Below are positions 1 to 58,208 of a DNA stretch of 64,000 bases, piece after piece. The notes below the pieces were generated by a model, which did no database searches, was not told where the DNA came from, and saw nothing but the letters and a program-made list of their open reading frames with translations. The translations under genes were made by a program, and so were the position numbers. The stretch is from the NCBI GenBank assembly GCA_964057225.1, contig OZ059897.1, forward strand, positions 15,872,001 through 15,936,000, written 5' to 3'. The stretch comes from Auanema rhodensis (lineage: Eukaryota; Animalia; Nematoda). Positions within the stretch are counted from its first letter, which is position 1. Each line of letters begins with the position of its first letter.

Positions 1-3000
1 CAACAATCACTATCTCTTGATGCCGTGTTGAGGGATGATTTGCCCGTAAGTTTCGATGTGTTTACTATTTTGTTTGTGTGCCTGCAACTCCTCCATGTGC
101 CGGGGTGCAGGCTGGCACCGCGAACGCCGTTTTCACTTCATCTTTTGGTTGTCTTGTGTCTCTCTCGTTCTCAAGCGATCAGGCTGCTGGGACAGCAGCA
201 GCCCTGTCCTTCCCTCCCCCAGGCCGATTGCCCCCTCTCTCTTTTTCTTTCTCATCTCACTTCATCGTGTTCTCTCTCTCCTCCCCACATTGCACGTTCG
301 TGTTTGTTGAGGGGGCCGCTTCGCAACCGCTCGCGCTCTGTCCTTTCTTTCAGGACATAGTAAGTACCAGCCAGCCAGCCGCATTGACTGTCTCACTTTT
401 CTCTTATCCTCTCCAATACTAAACTGTTCTCTCATTCGATTAACTCGTCGTCAGCGCGCTCCGTCCGGCGTATAGTGCCTCTCTATCGTCTTTGCCCCAC
501 TCGTTCTATAGATTCTCTTCATTGCTACATAGTTAGAGCTTGGTTTTTGGTTCAAACGACAGACACGCAGAATTCTCAGGTTGTCTGACTATCAGCTCCT
601 CCCAGCCAACTATTTGTTGGCCGTTTAGAACGCTGTCCATATTTTGCATCAGCAGCATAGTCTCCCGGCGTGGGACATGATTCGTCTCAAGTAAACCACA
701 TCTACCTCACCTTTACCTCCAACTACCTCAACTCATCTACCTCATTTGCTGTCCTCACTGGACTAAGCAGGTTTTCTTTTTTCCCTGTACAAATATCGTC
801 CTTAGGAACTTATTCGTATATCCCAGTTTTCCTCTGTGCTTATAGCTGGTAACTATATTCTTATTACCTTTTGCTGTATCAAACGGATATTCTGTGAACT
901 ACCTCTACTTATTCGCCTCCATTCGAGATCTCTTACGCAAATTCTTTTATTTTCTTTTATGAGCTCTAGCGGAATTCCTATTGATTCGACCAAACGTGCT
1001 CGAAAGTCATCTGAACCTCAGAGAATTGTCTTGAATCCTATAAAATCTCCTTCTACGATGAACTCTAACAATACTCCGTTTTCCTCACTCGGTGATATTT
1101 CATTGGCACAGCTGCAAGCAGCTATCAACGGAGCTTCTGCATCCAACGGTGCCGCTCAAACTACGGATCAAACCATGATCTTTAACCTGGCCAGTGCCAT
1201 TGCTATGAACAGTTTTCTAACTTTGCCAAATCCTAATAACCCTCTCATTGCGAATGTGGCTAAAATGATTCTAAGTTTGAATGTTCTTAATCAGCAAAAT
1301 GATTTGCTTGGAAGCAACAATCGTACTGATCCTTCTCAGTTAGGCAGTGCATTGATGTCGCCAATGCTCCTTCAGCAGTATGCTTCCACAATTGGAAGAG
1401 GCCAACCTTCGCAATCTGCAGCTGCATCTACTCCACAGCAAGCACTGCCGACGTCACAACCGACTTCACTAGGCTCTTTCCAACAACCACTGAAGAATTC
1501 ATCGGAGAACCAGCGCAAGCGATCGCTCGGAAACGAGCACACAGCTCTAGATACTAGCGCAAAGCGGGTCTTTGGCGAAACTGGCGCTGGAGCTGTAGAT
1601 AATCAGCCGGCTGTGCCGGTATCCAAAGACGACATCGAGAATTCACTTATTCGAATTCTTAATGAAGAGATTTATAACATATATGATGAGACTTTAAAAT
1701 CGGAACCCCAAGATCCGCCATCATCTCCTGGACAAGCTGCATTGATATCTGAAAGCAGACAGAGTAGTGGCTCCGATAGTAAAGGAGTATGCCGGTCAAC
1801 TCCTAATGAAGAAATTCCTATCGAATCAATGAGTCTTTTTGAAATTCTTGATTTACTCACTAGTGAAACTTCCGCAGATATTAGCTCATCAGGATCTGCT
1901 TTCCGGAAAGTTTCCAGCAAATCTGAAATTGGTTCTATTGCTAGTAGTTCATCGGATTCATCTCAGTGGGGGAATACTATCTCTCCTCCAAACAGCTCTC
2001 CCCAATCCTTTGCTGAATTGTCCCCTTTGTCTAATGATACACAAGCTCTGATTCAAGAAGTTGTGCTCAACCTCAAAAGTTCCATCGAGTCTGAAAAAGA
2101 GGTTTGTTCTTGCTTTCATGCAATTTTGTCCTACGAAGCCCTCAACAACTCTGTCGTTCTTTCTATATGTCCTTTATTGGCCTTGGTTTGTTTACTGCTT
2201 CCACGTTGTTTGAATGCGCTATGCGATTTTATCGGTTCAGCTGCAATTTCAAAAATGTTGGGCCCTGAGAACTTTAGAGAACCAAGAAAACATCGAACAA
2301 TTTTCATGTTTTGTCCAAAATCAAAACATTTTATTCCTCTTTCTCATTGATTTTTGCAGGCACAATTCCCAGTATTATGGCGTGGGCAAATTTTGATGAA
2401 GCAGCATGAGACATTGGTCCAAATGCACCTAATTCAAGGCCGAAAGGACTTTGTAACCGATTGCCTTGGCGATTTGGTTGATCAAGCTACCATCCGAAGC
2501 AATGGACCGAAACCGAATATGCGTATTAATCAGCGCATGCGGGCTGACAACAGCCACGTACAGAGTGAGTTAATTCGAAACCTTGGCAATATAATTTCCT
2601 GATTATTTGTAGATCTGCTGCTGAAATTAAACAACGGGTTCGGAAGTGCTTGTCTATGTGTACCTATTGGTTTCACTAGAGAGGAATGTAACATTAATAA
2701 CGACGCTATGAAAACTCAATTTATGGACTATTTCTCCAGCAAAGGCGCTGCTGGAATTGCAAATATTCCTCGAAGTGTAAGTTTTACTGAGATCGTGTGG
2801 ATTTTTATTTTTTATTTTCAGGAAAAGATTCCAGCAAGCCTCGTATATGTATTCCCTCCAAATGATTTCACTGAGAGCTACATGAAGACATATTCCGAAA
2901 GTTTATTCGAACGAATACGCCGTGCTGCCCAAAACGGCGTTGTCCCTTACCTTTTTCTAGTAATTGTTCCTTCTGATGAACCTTCCACCACTGCCCAAAC

Positions 3001-3007
3001 TGACTAG
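1..3007 (+). CDS. din-1: Spen/SHARP-family SPOC-domain nuclear receptor corepressor (DIN-1-like), 5'-partial, spliced
   Basis: Phase-consistent exon chain: <1-45, 354-359 (microexon), 629-690, 970-2101, 2360-2564, 2613-2776, 2822-3007. The C-terminus is a recognisable SPOC domain (FPVLWRGQILMK..VQMHLIQG; MRINQRMR; FMDYFSSKGAAGIANI; VYVFPPNDF; PYLFLVIV), preceded by a Ser/Gln-rich low-complexity region. An in-frame ATG at 959 could start a short isoform. Confidence 0.8.
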
Positions 3008-4662
3008 TCATTCTCCTGTTCTATTTGTAGCTGATATTATAGTTTAAGCGTTAAGTGAAATAGGTTAGTATGGGACAACGAGCACATACGGTTTTTCCCG
3101 GTTTGTATTATACATATTTACACTTTCTATCTCTATAACTCTAACAGGTACATTTGTTGTTTTACTTTATTTTTCCTCGTTTTGTTTGTTGTTCAGTGTC
3201 TTATACATGTTTGTCTTCTATATTCGTGCGATAGCGACTACCATTTATAGTTTTCCTTCAACTAAATATTTTCTCCTGTGAGTGCGTTGTATTTATGCCC
3301 CCTTCCCTTTCCTATTTCCATTTTTCCCAATAACCAAATAACAATTTATACATCTTCTATACAAAAATTACCTGACCCTACCCCAGTTACCCCCGTTGTC
3401 CCTCCATTTTCATCTCAGCTTTTATTAAAATTCTGTAGTTTTTGTATCATATGTTTGGTTATCGTTGTCGGCTTTCCTTGCCGCATGCTCAGAGATATAA
3501 AAATAAATTATAATATAATTGAGTTTTTTTTCTTTTATTTGGTAATAGATATTCGTGTATATTGTTTTTTATTCCCTACATAAAGTGCTACTAATCGATA
3601 TCAGCACAAAAATCGATGGCATCTCTTCAATGAGCGCTTATCAGCATTAGTGGAGCGCTCAGAGGTTTCTAGATAAGCGTCTAAGAACTCCAGGTTTGTT
3701 ACCGATAGATGACCCTTAAGTTTAAATTTTCTTGAATAGTATGATTGTTCCAAGATAAGAATTGTGATGTTATGCTTAAAGAAGTAATCCTCGAAATAGT
3801 ACATTCATTCGTGCATGTTTGTTACATTTGCCGTTCGTTCGTCCTCATTTCTTCTCCCTTTGCTGCTTCGTCCGGAGGGAAATTGTTGCGAATGAATTGA
3901 CATACGGCCTCTGTATGTCCGTCTGAATGTCTATTTGTTGGGCCTCAACATGCTTGCATCGCTCTTTTCAATGACATTGGTAGAAACGGATCTATACGTT
4001 TTGGAGGAAGGGAAGGCCACAAGCCTCTTGTGCGAGTATGTCACTCTTCCAATGCCATAGTGTCTTTTTTTTGCTTTTGTGGCTTATTTTCTACGCTCGC
4101 TCTGCCCATTACACAGAGAAGGAAAGGATATGAAAAAAGAGAAAGAGGTGAGTAGGGCAAACTAGAGAACGAGTGAGACAGAGAAACAAGGGTGAACGGA
4201 AGACTACGAATGAAATTAGAGAATGTGAAATAGCGGAGAAGCGAGAGTAAGGATAAAGTTATGTTGCGTTGGTTTTGACCAAAGGGCCTTTGAGTCCATA
4301 AACGATGGCGGTTTGAGTCAAAGAACACGACAAAGAACGAAAAGACAAGACTTCTTTGTATACAAAATGAGAACAACATCTGTTTGAGAAGAAATAAAGA
4401 GCAAAAGAACAAGAAAAGTAAAGGCAAGAAAATCGACACAACATGTAAGGTAGATACACAGATCTAATTTCTATCACCAAGTTTAAAGATAAATTACTTT
4501 CAGAAACTATGTTTACGTATGACTATTATAACATCAATTGAAGCGGAGACTAGTTATGATCACAAGTAGTTCTTAGGATTGCTCTTCTGTTCCAAACAAC
4601 ATATCTCTTCATATAGTAAGATGTTTTTTATGTTTTCCCATGTCTCCTTATGATATACTACA

Positions 4663-7600
4663 CTAAAGCGTCTTGAGCTTCGAGATGCCCAGCTTATCGG
4701 CCAAATCGTTCTGCAACAAAAGACAGGTAATTAGATGTGGAACAATAAGAACTGGAAAAGTCCTAACCAATGAAACCGATGATAATAGAAAAAAAGAAAA
4801 GAAAAGTTGATACGAACCGCGAATTGAATTTGGTTTGGATGATAAGGTATACCTCCAAGACTGGTGACCAACTCCTCGTGACGTCTTTCCATATCACCAG
4901 GGACTTCTACAGCATTGCCAGCTTCAGACTGAAAATAGCTGCATATACGCTGACCAATCATCAGTTTTTGTGTATTGACTTCAAGCTTCAAGCACAAATT
5001 CAATATATTTCATTTTTTAATATATTTTAAAGCTTCCTCTGCTCGAAAGTAGTGTCAATACTACCATTCCTTTTTTAGATTCAATCTCTAGTTTGACCCA
5101 AATGCGAAGGTCGACTGTTGGGGGCGCTGGGTGTTACTCCGTCAACTATTTCAGTTGGGTTAAAATGAGATAAAAAGAACAGAAGAGAAACAAAGATAGA
5201 AAAGAAAGAAGAACTAGAGAACGACAGCGAAACGGATGATTCGTTTTTCATTTCTTCAGTTCTGTTCAGATCAATCTTCTTCCACTCTGGCTCGTCATCT
5301 CAACTTACTATTCCTAAACATCGAGTACGAGTGTATTTTTTCTTATTTCTCTTTAATCTTTTTTATTTCGTTGTCGGCTTTTTGCTCAATAACCATGTTT
5401 CAGATTGCCCTCTTTCGATGAGGTCATGCAAGAATAAAAACAACTCATACGTCATGGCCAGCTGTACCATAGACTAGTGCATTCAAGGGACTGCTACTTC
5501 TACTCTTGCAATTAGCCAACACGAGATGGGAAAAAGATCATTTCAAGAATCATTTTCAAATTTGGTGCTTAACAAGCATAAGAAAACTTTCAAAACTTGA
5601 ATAAAAAAATCAGGGATTTATAATGTATAAATGCATAGTATTTGAGTCTCAGTTTGAAATTTTCTCTCAAATTGTTGCGTTGCAAAAGGTACAAGGTCAC
5701 CATTAACTGTGGGATCTTTGGAAAACCATCGTTTCACTCTATTCACATGCTTTCACATCGTGTGCCATCAACTCTGCAAGAGAAGCGGCAAATGTAACAT
5801 TGGAAATATACTCGTGTTAAATGGAGAATGTTATAACACAAGAGAAATAGACAGAGAGATAGATAGACAGATAGGAAATAAGAGCGGTGTGTATTTCACA
5901 ACACAATAATTCCTCATCATCATCATCATCATCATCATCACCAACGTTGATGTCGTCGACATCACTCCCCAAATCATCAACAGCCACAGCATCCTGTCTC
6001 ATATTATGCTTTCCTCTAATCGCATTGCTTACTATTACCTCTCATGGATATGTTATATCTCTTTCACTACATGTATGCATTATATTCATGCTGTATCTCA
6101 CCTGAGGCAATTCACGCATTGTTTTCATCAATTCTTGAATGCGGTCTGAAAATCCTGGAGCAAACGCATTGGGATCAACAGCAATAAAGCATTGGCCCTG
6201 AAAGAAAATGAATAGAAGATGCTGACGGGATCGACATAGAAAAGGCAAAGACTGAGTAGATATATGTATCTTTGAAAGTGGGACAGGAAAGCAAAGACAA
6301 GTTGAGGAACTTCGAAAATGTCAAGTGGCATTACTAATGCATGCTTTATTAATTACAGAATAGAGACACACGCAAAAAATAATTGATTCAATGTGTTGAA
6401 TAGAGAAATAAACAAGAAGAAGTATGAGAACGCTTCAAATATTCTTTTCTATTGCGAACCAAAAATGATATAATAAGGGTGAGAGTATTTCTATTCAAAG
6501 TTCTATGCAGAATCTCGACCGTATGCAGCATGGGAACTAACTACCCAAATTAGGATGAGAACACAGATTTACAAGAATTACTTTTGCTCCCACACTTTAG
6601 CTTTCGTTGGTCAAATTACCAATAGCGCCAGATGTCAACAGCGAATACATTACAAATTTAGAAAGCAAAAAAAAAAACAAAGATTTTTGTACTTTCTGAT
6701 ATTAACAGTACTAAAATCTGGTTCAGAAATCATCTTTACGCCAAAGATTGACGAGAGTATGACAAATGACAATGTTCGTTATGATCATGGAAAAGGGTAC
6801 AGCTAAACAACACCCAACCAATCAAAAAGCTTCAAAGAACTTCGAATATAACAAAATCAGTTCATCAAAGGAACACATATTCCCTGATTGTCAGCTATGT
6901 TTAAATCATGATGAAATGATCTTATTTTATATTTATCACTTTGTATCATTGTTAATGTTCCCAATTATATCCCTTTTCTGCATCGGACAGCATTGATCAT
7001 ATATTGATGCTATGTATGATAATCCAATTCTACTTAATTTGGTAGTATGTCTTTCGGAAATATAGAAGCTTTGACCGCAATTTGGAAATATCACCACAAC
7101 ACAAGCAAATTTACTATTGCCAGGTATCTATGCAGATAGCTGTTCGACGAGGGAGAGGAAACAAAATGAAGGGCTAAGGGGTGTTGGTAAAAGGGAGCGG
7201 CAAAGGAAAACCAAGAAATATGAACGAGGGGTTTCGATGGCAAATATTCCAAAAAGATGCAAAAAGAAGACTAAAAAACAGAGATCTCACAAAGAAATTA
7301 GTTGAAGTTTGATATATGCAATAAAACTGAGAAAGAAAATCAATTTTACACAAAGTTATAATCAAAAGAAAAAATTTAACTAAGGAGAAAAAAAGGAATA
7401 AACAACAAACATACCAAATCTGCGTCCTCGGTTGAACTCATCCATTTACGAACATTAGGGCCCCAATGAGCTCCGCCAAGAATTCCACAAAATATTTCTA
7501 CCAAAGCACATAAGCCATAACCTTTGTAACCACCTGAAAAAAATTCTTCTTTGCGATAGCTTCCGGAAAAACAAACAAACCGCTTAATTCAGTTCCACCA

Positions 7601-18277: not shown

Positions 18278-21200
18278 ATGGTTATACGACCACCAATTGA
18301 AAGTTGGTCTAGACCAGAGTTAGAAGATAAATATCACTCTATTATTGATAATTATCGAGAACTTCAAAAGAATAATAAAGAGTTGGAAAAGAAAGTATCA
18401 CAGTAAGTCCATTTATTCTTTTTGTATTTTGTATTTTTATCTACCAAGGCTAAATAGTAGATTTCGAAAATCTATCTTTGAAAGAAAAGCTAAAGAAGAT
18501 CATACAATAGAAAAAGAAAGATATGATGAACTTGTCAGGGATAATGAGCTTTTATTAATGAAAGTAAGATCCTCTTTCAAAATTATTTAATATATGCTCT
18601 TTTGTCAGTTAAAAACAGCAAAACATCAACTTCTCACTTATACTGCACCCAATGCTCGATCTACAACATATTCTGCAATGACTGTATGTTCTATTTTATT
18701 ATTACATTTAAAATTCTAAACATAAAAAACTTATTGGAGCATAATTATTAGGCATATATTAAATTGGTTGTTTTTTTACATTTCCAATAAGTTTTATTAT
18801 ATATTTTTTTGTACCATGATGTCAGCTTCCCAATTAAACATTTTTAAACGGTTCGTTGAACATGCTAAAGTACAATGCGAAATTTCAAATTCATATACAT
18901 ATGTAAAAAAAAACTTTTAATATAGATGATGATACTAATTCAGGGGAGGTTGGCTTCTGTACCTATGTCAACTGTTAGAAAAAATATTTCAATAGCACTA
19001 TCAGATAGAAGTCACAGAGGACAACAGCATGATGAGAACACAGGGAAAGGATCTGAGAGGTAGTTATATATAATAAATAAAACTATACATATAGATTTAT
19101 TGTAGAATGTCCAGCAATAGAAATCATGATACTAGTTTATCTGAGAAAGCAAACGTAATCAAATTGAATCGTACACTCCGTGAGAAAAATGCACAAATAG
19201 CTGAACTTCAATATGAAATAGAAAGATTAACAACGGTTAGATGAGAGTTATTCAATTAACATCTTAAATTCAATATTTCAGCAGCTACAATCTATTCGTA
19301 CAGATTTAGATGGTTATAAGTCGCAAACAGTTATTAAATCTGAAAATGATTCGTTGAATACCGAAAAAATAAAAGAGTCACAGCTTACTCATGAGAATGA
19401 ACTTGCTAAAAGAGATTTAGATATGGTTCGCAAAGAGTTGATAGTTCTCAAAGAGGCTAACGAACGACTTATAAAACAGTAAATTTAGTGCTAAAATATA
19501 TAACAAATATGTGATTTTTTAGGTCCTTAAACTATGAATTTGCTGACGGCGCTAATGACATTGTTTCTTTTAAGAAAGAAATTGTGGTTTTAGAAGAAAA
19601 ACTACGTGAATCGGAAAAGATTGAACGAGAAACAGCAAAGAAGAGACGTCACGAACGTCGTCAATATGAAGAATGGAAGCAACATTATCGCCAAAGGATT
19701 AAAGCTCTAGAAAGTAAAGAGCAAAATCGAGTCTCTGTAAAGTAAAAGATCATTCACGATTTCAATTAGAATTAATCAAAAACTTTCAGTAAAGTTAGTT
19801 CGTACGAGCAGGAATTTGATATCACACCGCGAAGCGACATATCTCATATAGATAGAGGTTCAAAGAGACGAAAACAGAAAGTATAGCAACTATTTTTTGA
19901 CATATTAATAGTATTAATACTGTAGGCTGGCCAAGAAATCACTGATGATATTCTTCTACGTCTTTACAATGATGTTGCAGGTCTTCTTGAAGCTCATAAT
20001 GGTGGACCAAATGCAAATGACTTCTTACTAGATGGTGGCCTTGATTTAAAATCAGCTGAAAAGTAATATATTATAATTGGAGATTGATCTTAACTACGTT
20101 ATATATTTAAGATGGCAAAAAATGTACGCCGAACTTTATGATGAACTTGAAAAGGTCAGGAATATGTTGTTAATACAGCATAACATAAATCAAAAACAAA
20201 ATACAGAGGTTGGACTATAAAATAGTAATTTAGTGAGCTTTAATAAGTTCAGATTTCTGTATTAAATGAGGAATGTGAGAGGTTAAGAGTCACTGCAGAA
20301 GAAAAGTTAAACGACATGAGGGATCAGTTGAAGAAAAAGCATCAAGAAGTTATATTGTTAGAAGAAAAAATCAGATCAATTGCTTATGCTGGACAAAAAC
20401 CTGTAACTTTTAATGAAAATAGTAGCAAAGTGGGTTTGAATTCCATTTTTAATTTAACACAACGATTGAAAAATTGGCAGAAATGCTTAGCAGTTGCACA
20501 AATTTTCTTTCGTGCAGTCATGTCCGAGTGGTTAAGGAGATTGACTAGAAATCAATTGGGCTTTGCCCGCGTAGGTTCGAATCCTGCTGACTGCGAAACT
20601 TTTTGCACTTATTCTATTGAATTTGTTCTATTTGAAGTAAAATTTTTTTTAGACATCAGATGATTCTTTGACATCTGAGCTGTCGATTCGGCTCTTGTCT
20701 CTAAGATTTACCAAATCATACCATGCTGCTATAATGAATTCAGAATCATGTCCATCTTCGGTGTTTCTATCACTTGAATTTTTCGATTTTGAGTTACAAA
20801 CTACACCTCACCTGCAATTTCTTGAAAAACAACCAATGGATCATACAACAATATACAACCTTGTTTGTTCAAATTTATTACTTCACTATTTACAAACGGT
20901 ATTCTTATTCCAAAAAGAACTTATAATAAATTTTTGTATTCAGAATGGAATTACAATCGAATTGTACCGTCCACATTCAAATAGCTATCATCAGTTAGGA
21001 ACTTCTGTAATAAGTTTGGCCCCTCTGCTTAGAAAGGTTGTTTTGTAACTTGTTTTCAGATAAATCATTATAATTTCAGAAAATTAAAAAATATGAAGGT
21101 ACTGCGAACGTTATTGACATAAAGTCTGGACATACCATAGCCGCAGTAACATATGAGATCACATTAGGGCAAGATTTAAATGAAGCTATAACAAGTTATA

Positions 21201-24596: not shown

Positions 24597-25338
24597 TCTA
24601 AAGATTTTCTTTTGGATCTTGTAAAACAAATTTTACATAAAAGCAAAGAAGAGAACGAATATTATCCCTAACACTTCTTTCGAAAAAAATATATCTACTT
24701 ATATATATATATTATTCTATAACTAATATCTCCAATACATGCTAACCAGAGCATGCATAATCCTGGCAAACAGCCAGATCTGAGGCCAACCAATCGTGGT
24801 AGGACCTTTTGCACTCTCTCGCGCGTCTAAGAATCGATACTATGGTTGGATACCAGCCAAGTGTAAATGTTGTGAATTTTCACCAGGAAGTGTTAGTATA
24901 TCGTAATATAAAACTTTGTATTTTTAAAACTAATAGTGAAATTGTTAATTTATCTATGATTTCAAAAATTTGAAATAATATGTTTTTCATTTCATTTTTG
25001 TATTTGCATCTTTGAATTTCAAATAATTTGGTACGCTTTTTTTTTGCTTTAGGTCATACTTTGGTTCTAAATTCTGATTAGAACATGTTATGCTAAGAAT
25101 GTTTTGTATTACTTACATTTGAAATTTTTCATGTTTTAAAAATATTGAGGTTTCCTTTTTTAATATTTATTTTGATATGATAAAAATGTTGCTTCGTGGC
25201 TCGAATTGAGAAGTTGATTTCTTTCATTTTATGACTCCGCATCCTTATCAACGCTTGTTTTGTTCTTTTCACGAGCTTAATTTCTAGCTATACGCACAGT
25301 AAAGTGTGCCATGATCCTGAGGGATACAAGATAACCAA

Positions 25339-27389
25339 ATGTATAATCCAGCGTCTGCAAGAAGGCCAGTAGGCAGCATGCAACCTCCGCAGCAAAGCCA
25401 ATGTGAAATTCAGTCGAGAGAAAAGTAAGTTTTTTCAAAAATATATATTGTTACTTTTGATATGTTTGTCTATATTTATTAAATTTTGATGGTTTAGGCT
25501 TGCTACATTCGTATATGAATATTTATTATTAAGCGGAGCTCAAAAGTCTGCTGAGGCTTTCAAGGAAGAAATAATCAATGTAAGTAACCAGATCAGTTTC
25601 TTGTTATGTAACTTTAATATATGTTATAGAATATTCCAAGTGCTGTTCACTTGAAAACTGCAGATAGTGGACCAGGGTTTCTACAAAGTTGGTGGCTGTA
25701 AGTTTTTGATTGCATGTTCTTTCTTTAAACAGCTTTTTTAAGTGTGTTCTGGGACCTTTACTGTGCAGCTCCTGAGAGAAGGGATGGCACTTCTGCTGAA
25801 CCTTCACAAGAAGGCAAAATGTTTTATGACATAGTAAGTTTGGGAGATTTCAAGAAAACTCAACTTTAACATTGTGATATAATCTAATGTTCTTTTTTCA
25901 GTTTGTCCAAGGAGGTGGGGGATATGGCCCAGGGCCCATAATGAACGGAATGCCAGGGATGGTTCGTAGTTTAAAAAATATTTTTGTTTTACATTTCTGA
26001 AATATTTTGTTATCGATTATGCAGTGGGCCTGGTGAATGCCTATTATGAGCTTCTTCTGACTCTGTCAACAATGTCTTAGGCGAAGGGGCGAGGTCTAAG
26101 TTGACCAGTTAGAATCAGAGAAACTGGGTGTGGTAGACACGGGAAGACGTATAGAGATGCAGAGTGGCTGATGGGGGTCAATGGTGGGCAAAAACAGGCC
26201 ATGTTCTGTAATGCCATTTGAAATTCAGCATGATTGAGTAGAAGTTAACAAATATTTATGCAGAGAATTCTTATTAAGTCTCTTAGATACAGATAAACAA
26301 AAAAGTAAAATATAAAAGCATCTCCAAAAATGACTGTTAGGGAGAGAGGGAGAGGAAGATAAATCTCATTATCAACTCCGAAGGGAATTGTTCAGTCAAT
26401 AACTTTTTTCAGTTCCCTCCAGGAGGTGGACAAATGGGAATGCCTGGACCTGAAGGAATGATGCCAGGTAATTACTTCAGAAACAGTTGAGGCTATTTTT
26501 TCAATGTTAGGATTTCGAGGATTTCCTCAGGGCAGACCAGCCCCTCAAGGTCCTATGCCAGGCGGCTATGGGATGTTTCCAGGTGGGCCTGATCCAAGAG
26601 GGATGCCGCCACAGAGAATGCCTCCAAATAGCATGAGAATGCCTAATACATCTTTTGCCCCTGGACCTGGAATGAGGCCAACACCAGGTCCACCACCACC
26701 TCAAGGTTTGTTAAAAACAATATGATTATATTAATCGTATTTTTAGCTATGGGCGGATTCCGTGGACCTCCCTTCATGGACTCGCCAAACCAGGGGTTTC
26801 CACCCAATGCAATGATGCCTAACGGCATGGGTTCACAAGCTCCAATGTCTATGGCATCGCCCGGTATGCCTCCTGGTCCTCCAGTTGTTCCTGATGGTTA
26901 CGGGATGATGGGTATGCCAGCTAGTTCTTCGTCTATGCCTCCCGTAAGAAAAAAAACGTCTTAGTTGAAATAATGTTTTTGTTTAAGTATTGCATGGGAG
27001 ACGCTTCCGTTTCTGTCGGTAATAATGGTATGCCTCCAACACATACAGATGGCTCACAAATGATGATGATGAATAGTGAAGAGATTAAACAATCTCCAGC
27101 ATCTACACCGCATGGGATAAATGGAGGTACCCCTGCCCCAGGATCTGCTCAAAGTGGCCAACCTCCTTCCTCGGGGACGCCAGTGGGCCCACCTAATGAG
27201 GATAAACCGGGAAGCAATAGCAAACCTGTAGGAAATAATACTGTTTTCCAGAATTTCGTTGTTTTTTTATAGGAAGATATGGATGAGATAAGCAAAATCA
27301 AGCAAGGTCTTATGGATGATTCTCTCAACTTCACCGAAACAGCGACAGCCGAGCAAACTGGTGCGGGTGGTGGAAGCTTCTATAACTGA
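25339..27389 (+). CDS. sam-10: SSDP/SSBP2-4 family LisH/LUFS transcription cofactor
   Basis: REKLATFVYEYLLLSGAQKSAEAF (LisH) and PGFLQSWW..FWDLYCAAPERR, followed by a Gly/Pro/Met-rich region. C-terminal DEISKIKQGLMDD; stop TGA at 27387-27389. Confidence 0.88.
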
Positions 27390-28210: not shown

Positions 28211-28302
28211 AATAAAAAATATGTCGGTAAAAAACCTAGAACTCGTTGATACGAGCATGTATTTATGTGGGAGATGTTCTAAGGCTAATTTTATCATTGC
28301 AG
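28211..28302 (+). promoter_or_regulatory. Operon-type intercistronic region: AATAAA followed ~86 nt later by an unpaired 3' splice (trans-splice) site directly before the mac-1 ATG
   Basis: AATAAA at 28211-28216 and TTGCAG|ATG at 28297-28305; the spacing is typical of SL2 operons. Confidence 0.55.
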
Positions 28303-31993
<3,691 letters not shown>

Positions 31994-57905: not shown

Positions 57906-58208
57906 TTTGTTGCAACCCACTACTCGATCCAGGGAAAATTCAATTTATGTTAGCAGTTGTATATAGCACGACAATAAAAAGTAGACCATGAAGGTGTATA
58001 AGTATAAGCCTAGGCTTATCCACTACCTAGAGTTGCGCTTAGGCTTATCCACTACCTAGAGTTACGCTTAGGCTTATCTACTACCTAGAGTTACGTTTAG
58101 GCTTATCTACTACCTAGAGTTACTCTTACGCCTATTCACAGCATTTGAGAATACTTTTTTCGAGTAGTTAAAAAAACAAAGATTTGGAAATTTTGGGGTG
58201 GCAACAAA
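57906..58208. mobile_element. Possible degenerate MITE-like element with 13-bp inverted termini enclosing the minisatellite
   Basis: TTTGTTGCAACCC (57906-57918) versus GGGTGGCAACAAA (58196-58208): a 12/13 inverted match. No clear target-site duplication seen. Confidence 0.3.
58004..58134 (+). repeat. 29-bp minisatellite (~4.3 copies) containing TTAGGCTTA, starting with a 16-bp palindrome
   Basis: Unit ~TTAGGCTTATC(C/T)ACTACCTAGAGTT(A/G)CGC. TAGGC recurs at 58011, 58040, 58069 and 58098, with a degenerate copy at 58127. Palindrome ATAAGCCTAGGCTTAT at 58004-58019. Confidence 0.92.

Follow-up and report, generated by a model that had tools for sequence, protein, structure and literature searches.

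Conserved stretches of intron surrounding unproductively spliced sites, which are targeted by nonsense-mediated decay (NMD), are reported from nematode genes (Mitrovich and Anderson 2000), with C. elegans genes for ribosomal proteins and SR proteins as examples. A second class of comparable sequences, the conserved non-coding elements (CNEs) of worms, was established with three Caenorhabditis species, and its members were interpreted as DNA enhancers (Vavouri et al. 2007, PMC1852409). Worm CNEs have a mean length of 69 bp and an identity of 96%, are intronic in 30% of cases, and have a G+C content above that of the genome. They sit near developmental regulators, and the intronic ones usually lie upstream of alternative start sites (PMC1852409). 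The nematode telomerase RNA, terc-1, is hosted in an intron of nmy-2 (PMC12921731).

The window analysed here is a stretch of 64,000 nt of Auanema rhodensis DNA, and it contains a 450-nt intron of sam-10 that resembles each of these systems in part. Like the nematode NMD-site introns, the sam-10 intron has a segment that exceeds the exons in conservation, starts at a splice site and includes an alternative site giving a stop; unlike in those introns, the use of the alternative acceptor and the decay of its product are here proposed, and the host has no known RNA binding. The sam-10 element shares with the worm CNEs its length, an identity of ~96-98% over saturated neutral divergence, an intronic position, G+C richness, a developmental-regulator host and the lack of a match to known RNAs (PMC1852409). 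It differs from them in that it is known from two full sequences, adjoins the splice donor, and carries substitutions that preserve RNA pairing. Like terc-1, it is a candidate structured non-coding sequence within the intron of a protein-coding gene; unlike terc-1, the sam-10 intron contains no GCCUAA-permutation template of at least 8 nt on either strand, and no conserved H/ACA end.

The host gene is the SSDP/sam-10 orthologue, with exons showing 92-94% protein identity to CAI4228564/5 of Auanema sp. JU1783. The exons were compared singly by reference, unjoined, and the full-length comparisons used database proteins; the query with exon 26988-27227 returned only Logan fragments in the protein word search. 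The JU1783 locus (L005; GCA_943334845.2) was reached via full-length orthologues found by protein representative, followed by a word search. It is syntenic with the window, with the NVL/mac-1 gene downstream of sam-10. The gene structure (Table 1) is that of the contigs of two runs (X5 and X13), which are taken to be RNA because their contigs are spliced. The canonical junction, 25961>26412, had a depth of 280 and 181 in the contigs of these two runs.

Table 1. Features of the sam-10 intron and its surroundings, in window coordinates.
Feature	Position	Strand	Sequence or evidence
Conserved block upstream of sam-10	24792-24880		At least 93% identity to JU1783 over 60 nt
sam-10 exons	25902-25961; 26412-26467; 26511-26705; 26747-26943; 26988-27227; 27273 onward	+	Spliced contigs, two RNA runs
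Donor-spanning helix	25958-25963 / 26009-26014	+	GAUG-GU (hyphen at the exon end) with GUUAUC; predicted pairing
Sole long intron of sam-10, 450 nt	25962-26411	+	Spliced RNA contigs
Weak 5' splice site	25962-25967	+	GUUCGU; identical in both Auanema species
AU-rich 63-nt segment	25962-26024	+	3' end UUAUGCAG; 87% identity to JU1783, global alignment
Candidate alternative 3' splice site	26022-26024	+	CAG; UUAUGCAG kept in both Auanema species
Candidate closing helix P1, 5' strand	26028-26033	+	GCCUGG; JU1783 GCUUGG; RNAalifold
Ultraconserved core, 89 nt	26036-26124	+	95.5% identity to JU1783, global alignment
Conserved hairpin	26055-26114	+	UUCUGACU/AGUUAGAA, GUCAAC/GUUGAC, distal stem; both species
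P1, 3' strand	26124-26129	+	CUGGGU; JU1783 UUAAGC
3' half of the element as preliminarily described	26125-26210	+	56% identity to JU1783; better-kept patch AGAGAUGCAGAGUG at 26153-26166
3' intron part, unconserved	26211-26411	+	Up to the used acceptor UUUUUUCAG; 26% identity to JU1783, length differs
First coding exon of NVL	28283-28374		At least 93% identity to JU1783 over 60 nt

The 450-nt intron is an outlier, since the four downstream sam-10 introns measure only 41-45 nt each. Its G+C content is 50% in 26020-26210, while the stretches of intron that border this centre have 19% and 31%. The equivalent intron is 356 nt long in JU1783, 62 nt in C. auriculariae, 4.2 kb in Mesorhabditis belari (L006:3112-7307) and ~2.6 kb in C. 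elegans (L009:~2656-5227), and is absent in Diploscapter pachys. A distant relative represented by a 34-kb Logan contig (L001) reads GMNGMPGM-FPPGMPGMPGPDGMM uninterrupted and is therefore without an intron at this site. The long introns of M. belari and C. elegans showed neither an Rfam family nor a homologue of the Auanema core.

In the global gene alignment with JU1783, the coding exons were 73-90% identical and the five short sam-10 introns 42-57% identical; both the AU-rich segment behind the donor and the core of the long intron lie well above the short introns (Table 1). A local alignment of 26035-26121 gave 85 identical positions of 87 (~98%), and the core has exact runs of 48 and 30 nt in common with JU1783. 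Only three blocks reached at least 93% identity over 60 nt in 9.2 kb of synteny, and the sam-10 core is the sole intronic one. The 5' edge of the conserved block is exactly the 5' splice site. Judged by sequence comparison, the ~165 nt at 25962-26124 are a genuine conserved non-coding intronic element under strong purifying selection. As far as seen, this element is restricted to the Auanema lineage, full intron sequences having been compared for two species (the window and JU1783). Two further relatives (D and E; X15 and X16) each had 2 of 43 sampled intron 31-mers in common with the window, which is compatible with the exact runs of the core and is a hint only. Relative D has an intron at this position in its X15 contig, and the last 296 nt of it gave no alignment at 80% identity or more. 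The preliminary description had placed a functional non-coding element at 26020-26210. The presence of such an element was borne out, its 5' part being better kept than the exons; its extent was not, as the conserved span (25962-26124) overlaps the described one only by half.

The block at 24792-24880, which precedes the start codon of sam-10 by ~460 nt, is ultraconserved non-coding sequence, with an exact run of 51 nt and 83% identity over 24772-24907. It is intergenic in the JU1783 annotation, has no Rfam match, and probably serves sam-10 as a promoter, 5'UTR or enhancer element. The motifs that it has in common with the intronic core were at chance level only and unconserved. The first coding exon of NVL/mac-1 showed ~98% nucleotide identity to JU1783, with exact runs of 35 and 30 nt. 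This identity is far above that of the other coding exons, which suggests extra constraint at the 5' end of the mRNA.

The explanation that we tentatively favour is that 25962-26124 may be a cis-acting pre-mRNA module, restricted to Auanema, for the splicing of this intron. It is favoured because the conserved block starts at the donor, the donor is weak, an acceptor giving a stop is kept, and pairing on the host strand is preserved. Where C. auriculariae and M. belari carry GUGAGU, the donor of both Auanema species is GUUCGU. As the preliminary description had pointed out, the candidate acceptor CAG lies 63 nt from the donor, a distance inside the 41-67 nt range of the other sam-10 introns. 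With the exon before the intron ending in phase 0, use of the CAG would read TGG GCC TGG TGA. A stop is predicted after three codons in the window and after seven in JU1783, and the locus thus has a conserved alternative site giving a premature stop, as a poison splice site (AS-NMD) does. The 31-mers in common with relatives D and E are also compatible with this explanation.

Under the splicing explanation, the donor would be kept weak, and the alternative acceptor, at an intron-typical distance, would when used put a stop just after the LUFS domain. The near-invariant core of ~90 nt, with its hairpin directly behind the CAG, is probably a protein-binding platform or a small local fold, on which a regulator might act and to which RNA pairing may contribute. 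A shift of splicing from 26412 to the unproductive acceptor, or intron retention, would lead to nonsense-mediated decay and would in this way set the SSDP level.

The RNA contigs temper this proposal. The productive junction was dominant in runs X5 and X13 (depth 181-280, against 3-6 for unspliced RNA), and no contig of either run contained the 25961>26025 junction; contigs lose rare forms, and the junction is therefore a minor species at most. An unspliced contig of X5 spanned the whole intron at a depth of 5.7. One X13 contig covered 26129-26380 alone, at a depth of 3.2, starting just 3' of the conserved block. No discrete RNA coinciding with the element was seen among the X5 and X13 contigs, which cannot show RNA ends. 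The RNA contigs therefore contained neither the ~190-nt RNA nor the 25961>26025 junction that had been proposed for this intron. The proposed acceptor and early stop are kept in JU1783, while their use was not seen in the contigs; a structure-gated poison exon, as suggested in the preliminary description, remains a live hypothesis in modified form. SSDP is not known as an RNA-binding protein, so that there is no evident regulator and autoregulation would be unexpected. A search of the literature on SSDP/sam-10 splicing found nothing relevant.

The analysis of 26025-26130 by RNAalifold gave three helices, namely P1, a small hairpin at 26035-54 and the hairpin at 26055-26114. Four of the six P1 pairs are changed in JU1783; all are preserved, one of them by changes on both sides, and P1 alone among the 54 shared 6-bp helices of the region has more than two changed pairs. 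In the donor-spanning helix, a G:C pair is replaced by A:U in JU1783 (a two-sided change) and a G:U pair by G:C. The hairpin at 26055-26114 carries two substitutions, G26083U in the loop and A26114G in the basal pair (U:A to U:G). No substitution within P1, the donor helix or the hairpin disrupts pairing, and two of the changes are two-sided. Several of the pairs are G-U, so the pairing works only on the host-sense strand. The helix changes are all transitions opposite G or U, a kind that easily preserves pairing. In the 3' arm of the hairpin (L005:4740-4756, corresponding to 26107-26123 of the window), a near-repeat, AGUUAGA / AGAAUCAGA, can pair in two registers with UCUGACUCU, and A26114G makes the second register perfect in JU1783.

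The statistical tests of these structures were not significant. The consensus fold of 26025-26130 had an SCI of 0.89 and a z of -1.65, with 10 of 150 shuffles as good. The conserved-structure test gave a z of -0.9 for the whole conserved block, and the column-shuffle test a z of -0.23 for the donor helix region (25950-26030). The local 106-nt fold was unremarkable in the window species (z -0.25). The loops and junctions of the core are as invariant as its stems, and the hairpin at 26055-26114 also folds on the minus strand. The smaller local RNA model predicted for 26025-26130 has some support, but its statistics are weak. The invariant loops and the hairpin that folds on both strands fit a constraint at the DNA level equally well, and, for the splicing explanation as a whole, the comparison comprises two full sequences.

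A close rival, possible though on the unlikely side, is that the element acts as DNA, as a worm CNE that would be an intronic enhancer of sam-10 or of an internal promoter. In the internal-promoter version, transcripts would begin within the intron, in its unconserved 3' part, and would be spliced to the acceptor at 26412. Worm CNEs are defined by a length of at least 30 bp, a non-coding and non-repeat nature, ~96% identity over diverged neutral sites and no correspondence to a known RNA. The sam-10 core has 89 nt at 95.5-98% identity versus 42-57% in the short introns, is non-coding, is single-copy in the window and the loci searched, and is Rfam-negative. The element fits the class in size, identity, composition and type of host gene, SSDP being a developmental transcription cofactor. 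The second ultraconserved non-coding block upstream, the conservation of the loops and the strand symmetry of the hairpin agree with an enhancer, as do putative nuclear-receptor-like half-sites, AGGTC(A/T)/TGACC, found in the core by eye. The start of the X13 contig just 3' of the block would suit an internal promoter, but at a depth of 3 this may be sampling, and no spliced-leader-joined or intron-initiated contigs were seen in X5 and X13. That C. elegans and M. belari likewise have a long intron here speaks for this rival as well. Against an enhancer, the block adjoins the splice donor and includes the conserved acceptor, and the substitutions in P1 and the donor helix keep pairing via G-U, which is sensible only in RNA.

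A more elaborate proposal, which we regard as unlikely, joins the predicted structures into an Auanema-specific splicing switch. The helix 25958-63/26009-14 would mask the weak donor, a three-way-junction RNA of ~100 nt (26028-26129) would lie behind the poison acceptor, and the two in concert would sense a factor and control, via nonsense-mediated decay, how much of the Ldb1/Chip cofactor SSDP is made; or this ~100-nt domain would leave the intron as a small RNA of a new class.

Taken by itself, an intron-hosted non-coding RNA of ~100 nt (26028-26129), closed by P1 and bearing the hairpin, either of a new class or as a microRNA-type precursor from the spliced intron, seems quite improbable. 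The compact three-way-junction model with its covarying closing helix is in its favour, as are an identity near 98%, like that of small structural RNAs, and its place in the lone long intron of sam-10, upstream of four short ones. The libraries examined probably would miss a species of 100 nt. No contig coincides with the element, however, and conservation extends through the 5' flank as far as the donor, which would be needless for a trimmed intronic RNA. A covariance model of the 26025-26130 domain found nothing in the sam-10 loci of M. belari, D. pachys, C. auriculariae, C. elegans and the L001 relative, and no second copy elsewhere in the window. Pattern scans of metagenomes for the core were empty.

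The Rfam, snoRNA and telomerase searches were also negative. Rfam 15 gave no match in 25900-26450 above noise, even at an E of 10, and none in the sam-10 loci of JU1783, C. elegans and M. belari, so that the earlier suggestion of an intron-encoded RNA found no counterpart among the known classes. The only Rfam match at the gathering threshold in the 64-kb window was a tRNA-Ser(AGA) at 20513-20596 on the plus strand. Box C/D snoRNAs have a C box (RUGAUGA) and a D box (CUGA) adjoining a terminal stem; no C box is present in 26020-26260, and CUGA occurs at 26057 and 26168 only, away from P1. Box H/ACA snoRNAs have two hairpins, an H box (ANANNA) between them and an ACA 3 nt from the 3' end. In the sam-10 intron, the conserved hairpin is followed by the H-like AGAGAA (26117), but the region of the 3' hairpin is only 56% conserved, and the ACA at 26194 is AUG in JU1783.

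The template of a nematode telomerase RNA is at least 8 nt long and is a permutation of the TTAGGC complement (PMC12921731). No such 8-mer was found on either strand of the intron, and the nearest instance is one antisense 7-mer at 26076. A cluster of TTAGGC/GCCTAA 8-mers was present elsewhere in the window, at ~58005-58100 on the minus strand, and is an interstitial telomeric repeat tract. A microRNA precursor is expected to be a hairpin of ~60-70 nt with a stem of ~22 bp, to be better conserved in its arms than in its loop, and to yield small-RNA reads from the arms. The hairpin at 26055-26114 forms in both species, has a 5-nt asymmetric bulge and a z of -1.08, and its loop is as conserved as its arms; there was no Rfam microRNA match. 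A coding exon was rejected, as stops are present in all plus-strand frames, and a 1-nt indel gives the two species different read-through frames. A dispersed repeat or transposon was rejected, as no second copy was found in the 64-kb window, 10 kb of JU1783 or the other loci searched. The orthologous position and the purifying selection speak against a neutral relic of a repeat.

The preliminary description had interpreted 26020-26210 as a multibranch RNA of ~190 nt in which the basal helix would cover the CAG and so control a poison or terminal exon. The helices that it listed are in the minimum free energy (MFE) fold of this segment, which has -64.5 kcal/mol (z -2.68 against shuffles) on the plus strand and -43.7 kcal/mol (z -2.24) on the minus strand. 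In a regression of MFE on base composition over 1330 windows of 191 nt from both strands of the 64 kb, the plus-strand fold came out first (z -3.47; runner-up -3.26), a rank that is helped by the choice of the element borders by eye. The fold is thus strong for the segment alone; when the intron is folded as a whole, it does not surpass shuffles (z 0.04), with UGCAG taking a different partner and the basal helix replaced.

Alignment with the orthologous intron showed that this fold is not common to JU1783, in which 39 of the 57 predicted pairs are kept and 18 are broken, mostly in the outer helices. The losses include the helices GGCCUG/CAGGCC (3 of 6 pairs broken) and UGCCUAUUA/UGGUGGGCA, the GUGU-ACAC hairpin, and about half of the pairs of the long helix 26038-57/26170-90. 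Conservation of both strands has preserved the inner pairing ACUCUGU/GCAGAGU (26060-66/26159-65). The consensus fold with JU1783 had an SCI of 0.45 and a z of -0.31, with 58 of 150 column shuffles as good, and the JU1783 counterpart region folds at a z of -1.38. The borders of the unit resemble AG and GUAAUG, which would delimit a cassette of 183 nt, but the GUAAUG at 26208 reads UAUAAG in JU1783. On these alignments, the 190-nt multibranch fold is no part of the conserved element and is largely refuted at the level of conservation; with junction support also absent in the RNA contigs, a multibranch-gated exon is very improbable.

A strong fold in a single species, here the first of 1330 windows, can thus be largely irrelevant, even where a conserved element half overlaps with it. 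The dosage of SSDP matters for Ldb1/LIM-homeodomain complexes in neural development, and a control element of sam-10 is therefore a sensible target for functional tests. The introns of this genome are trimmed to ~45 nt, so that a long one signals function, and sam-10 bears this out; the most conserved sequence of the whole gene is non-coding.
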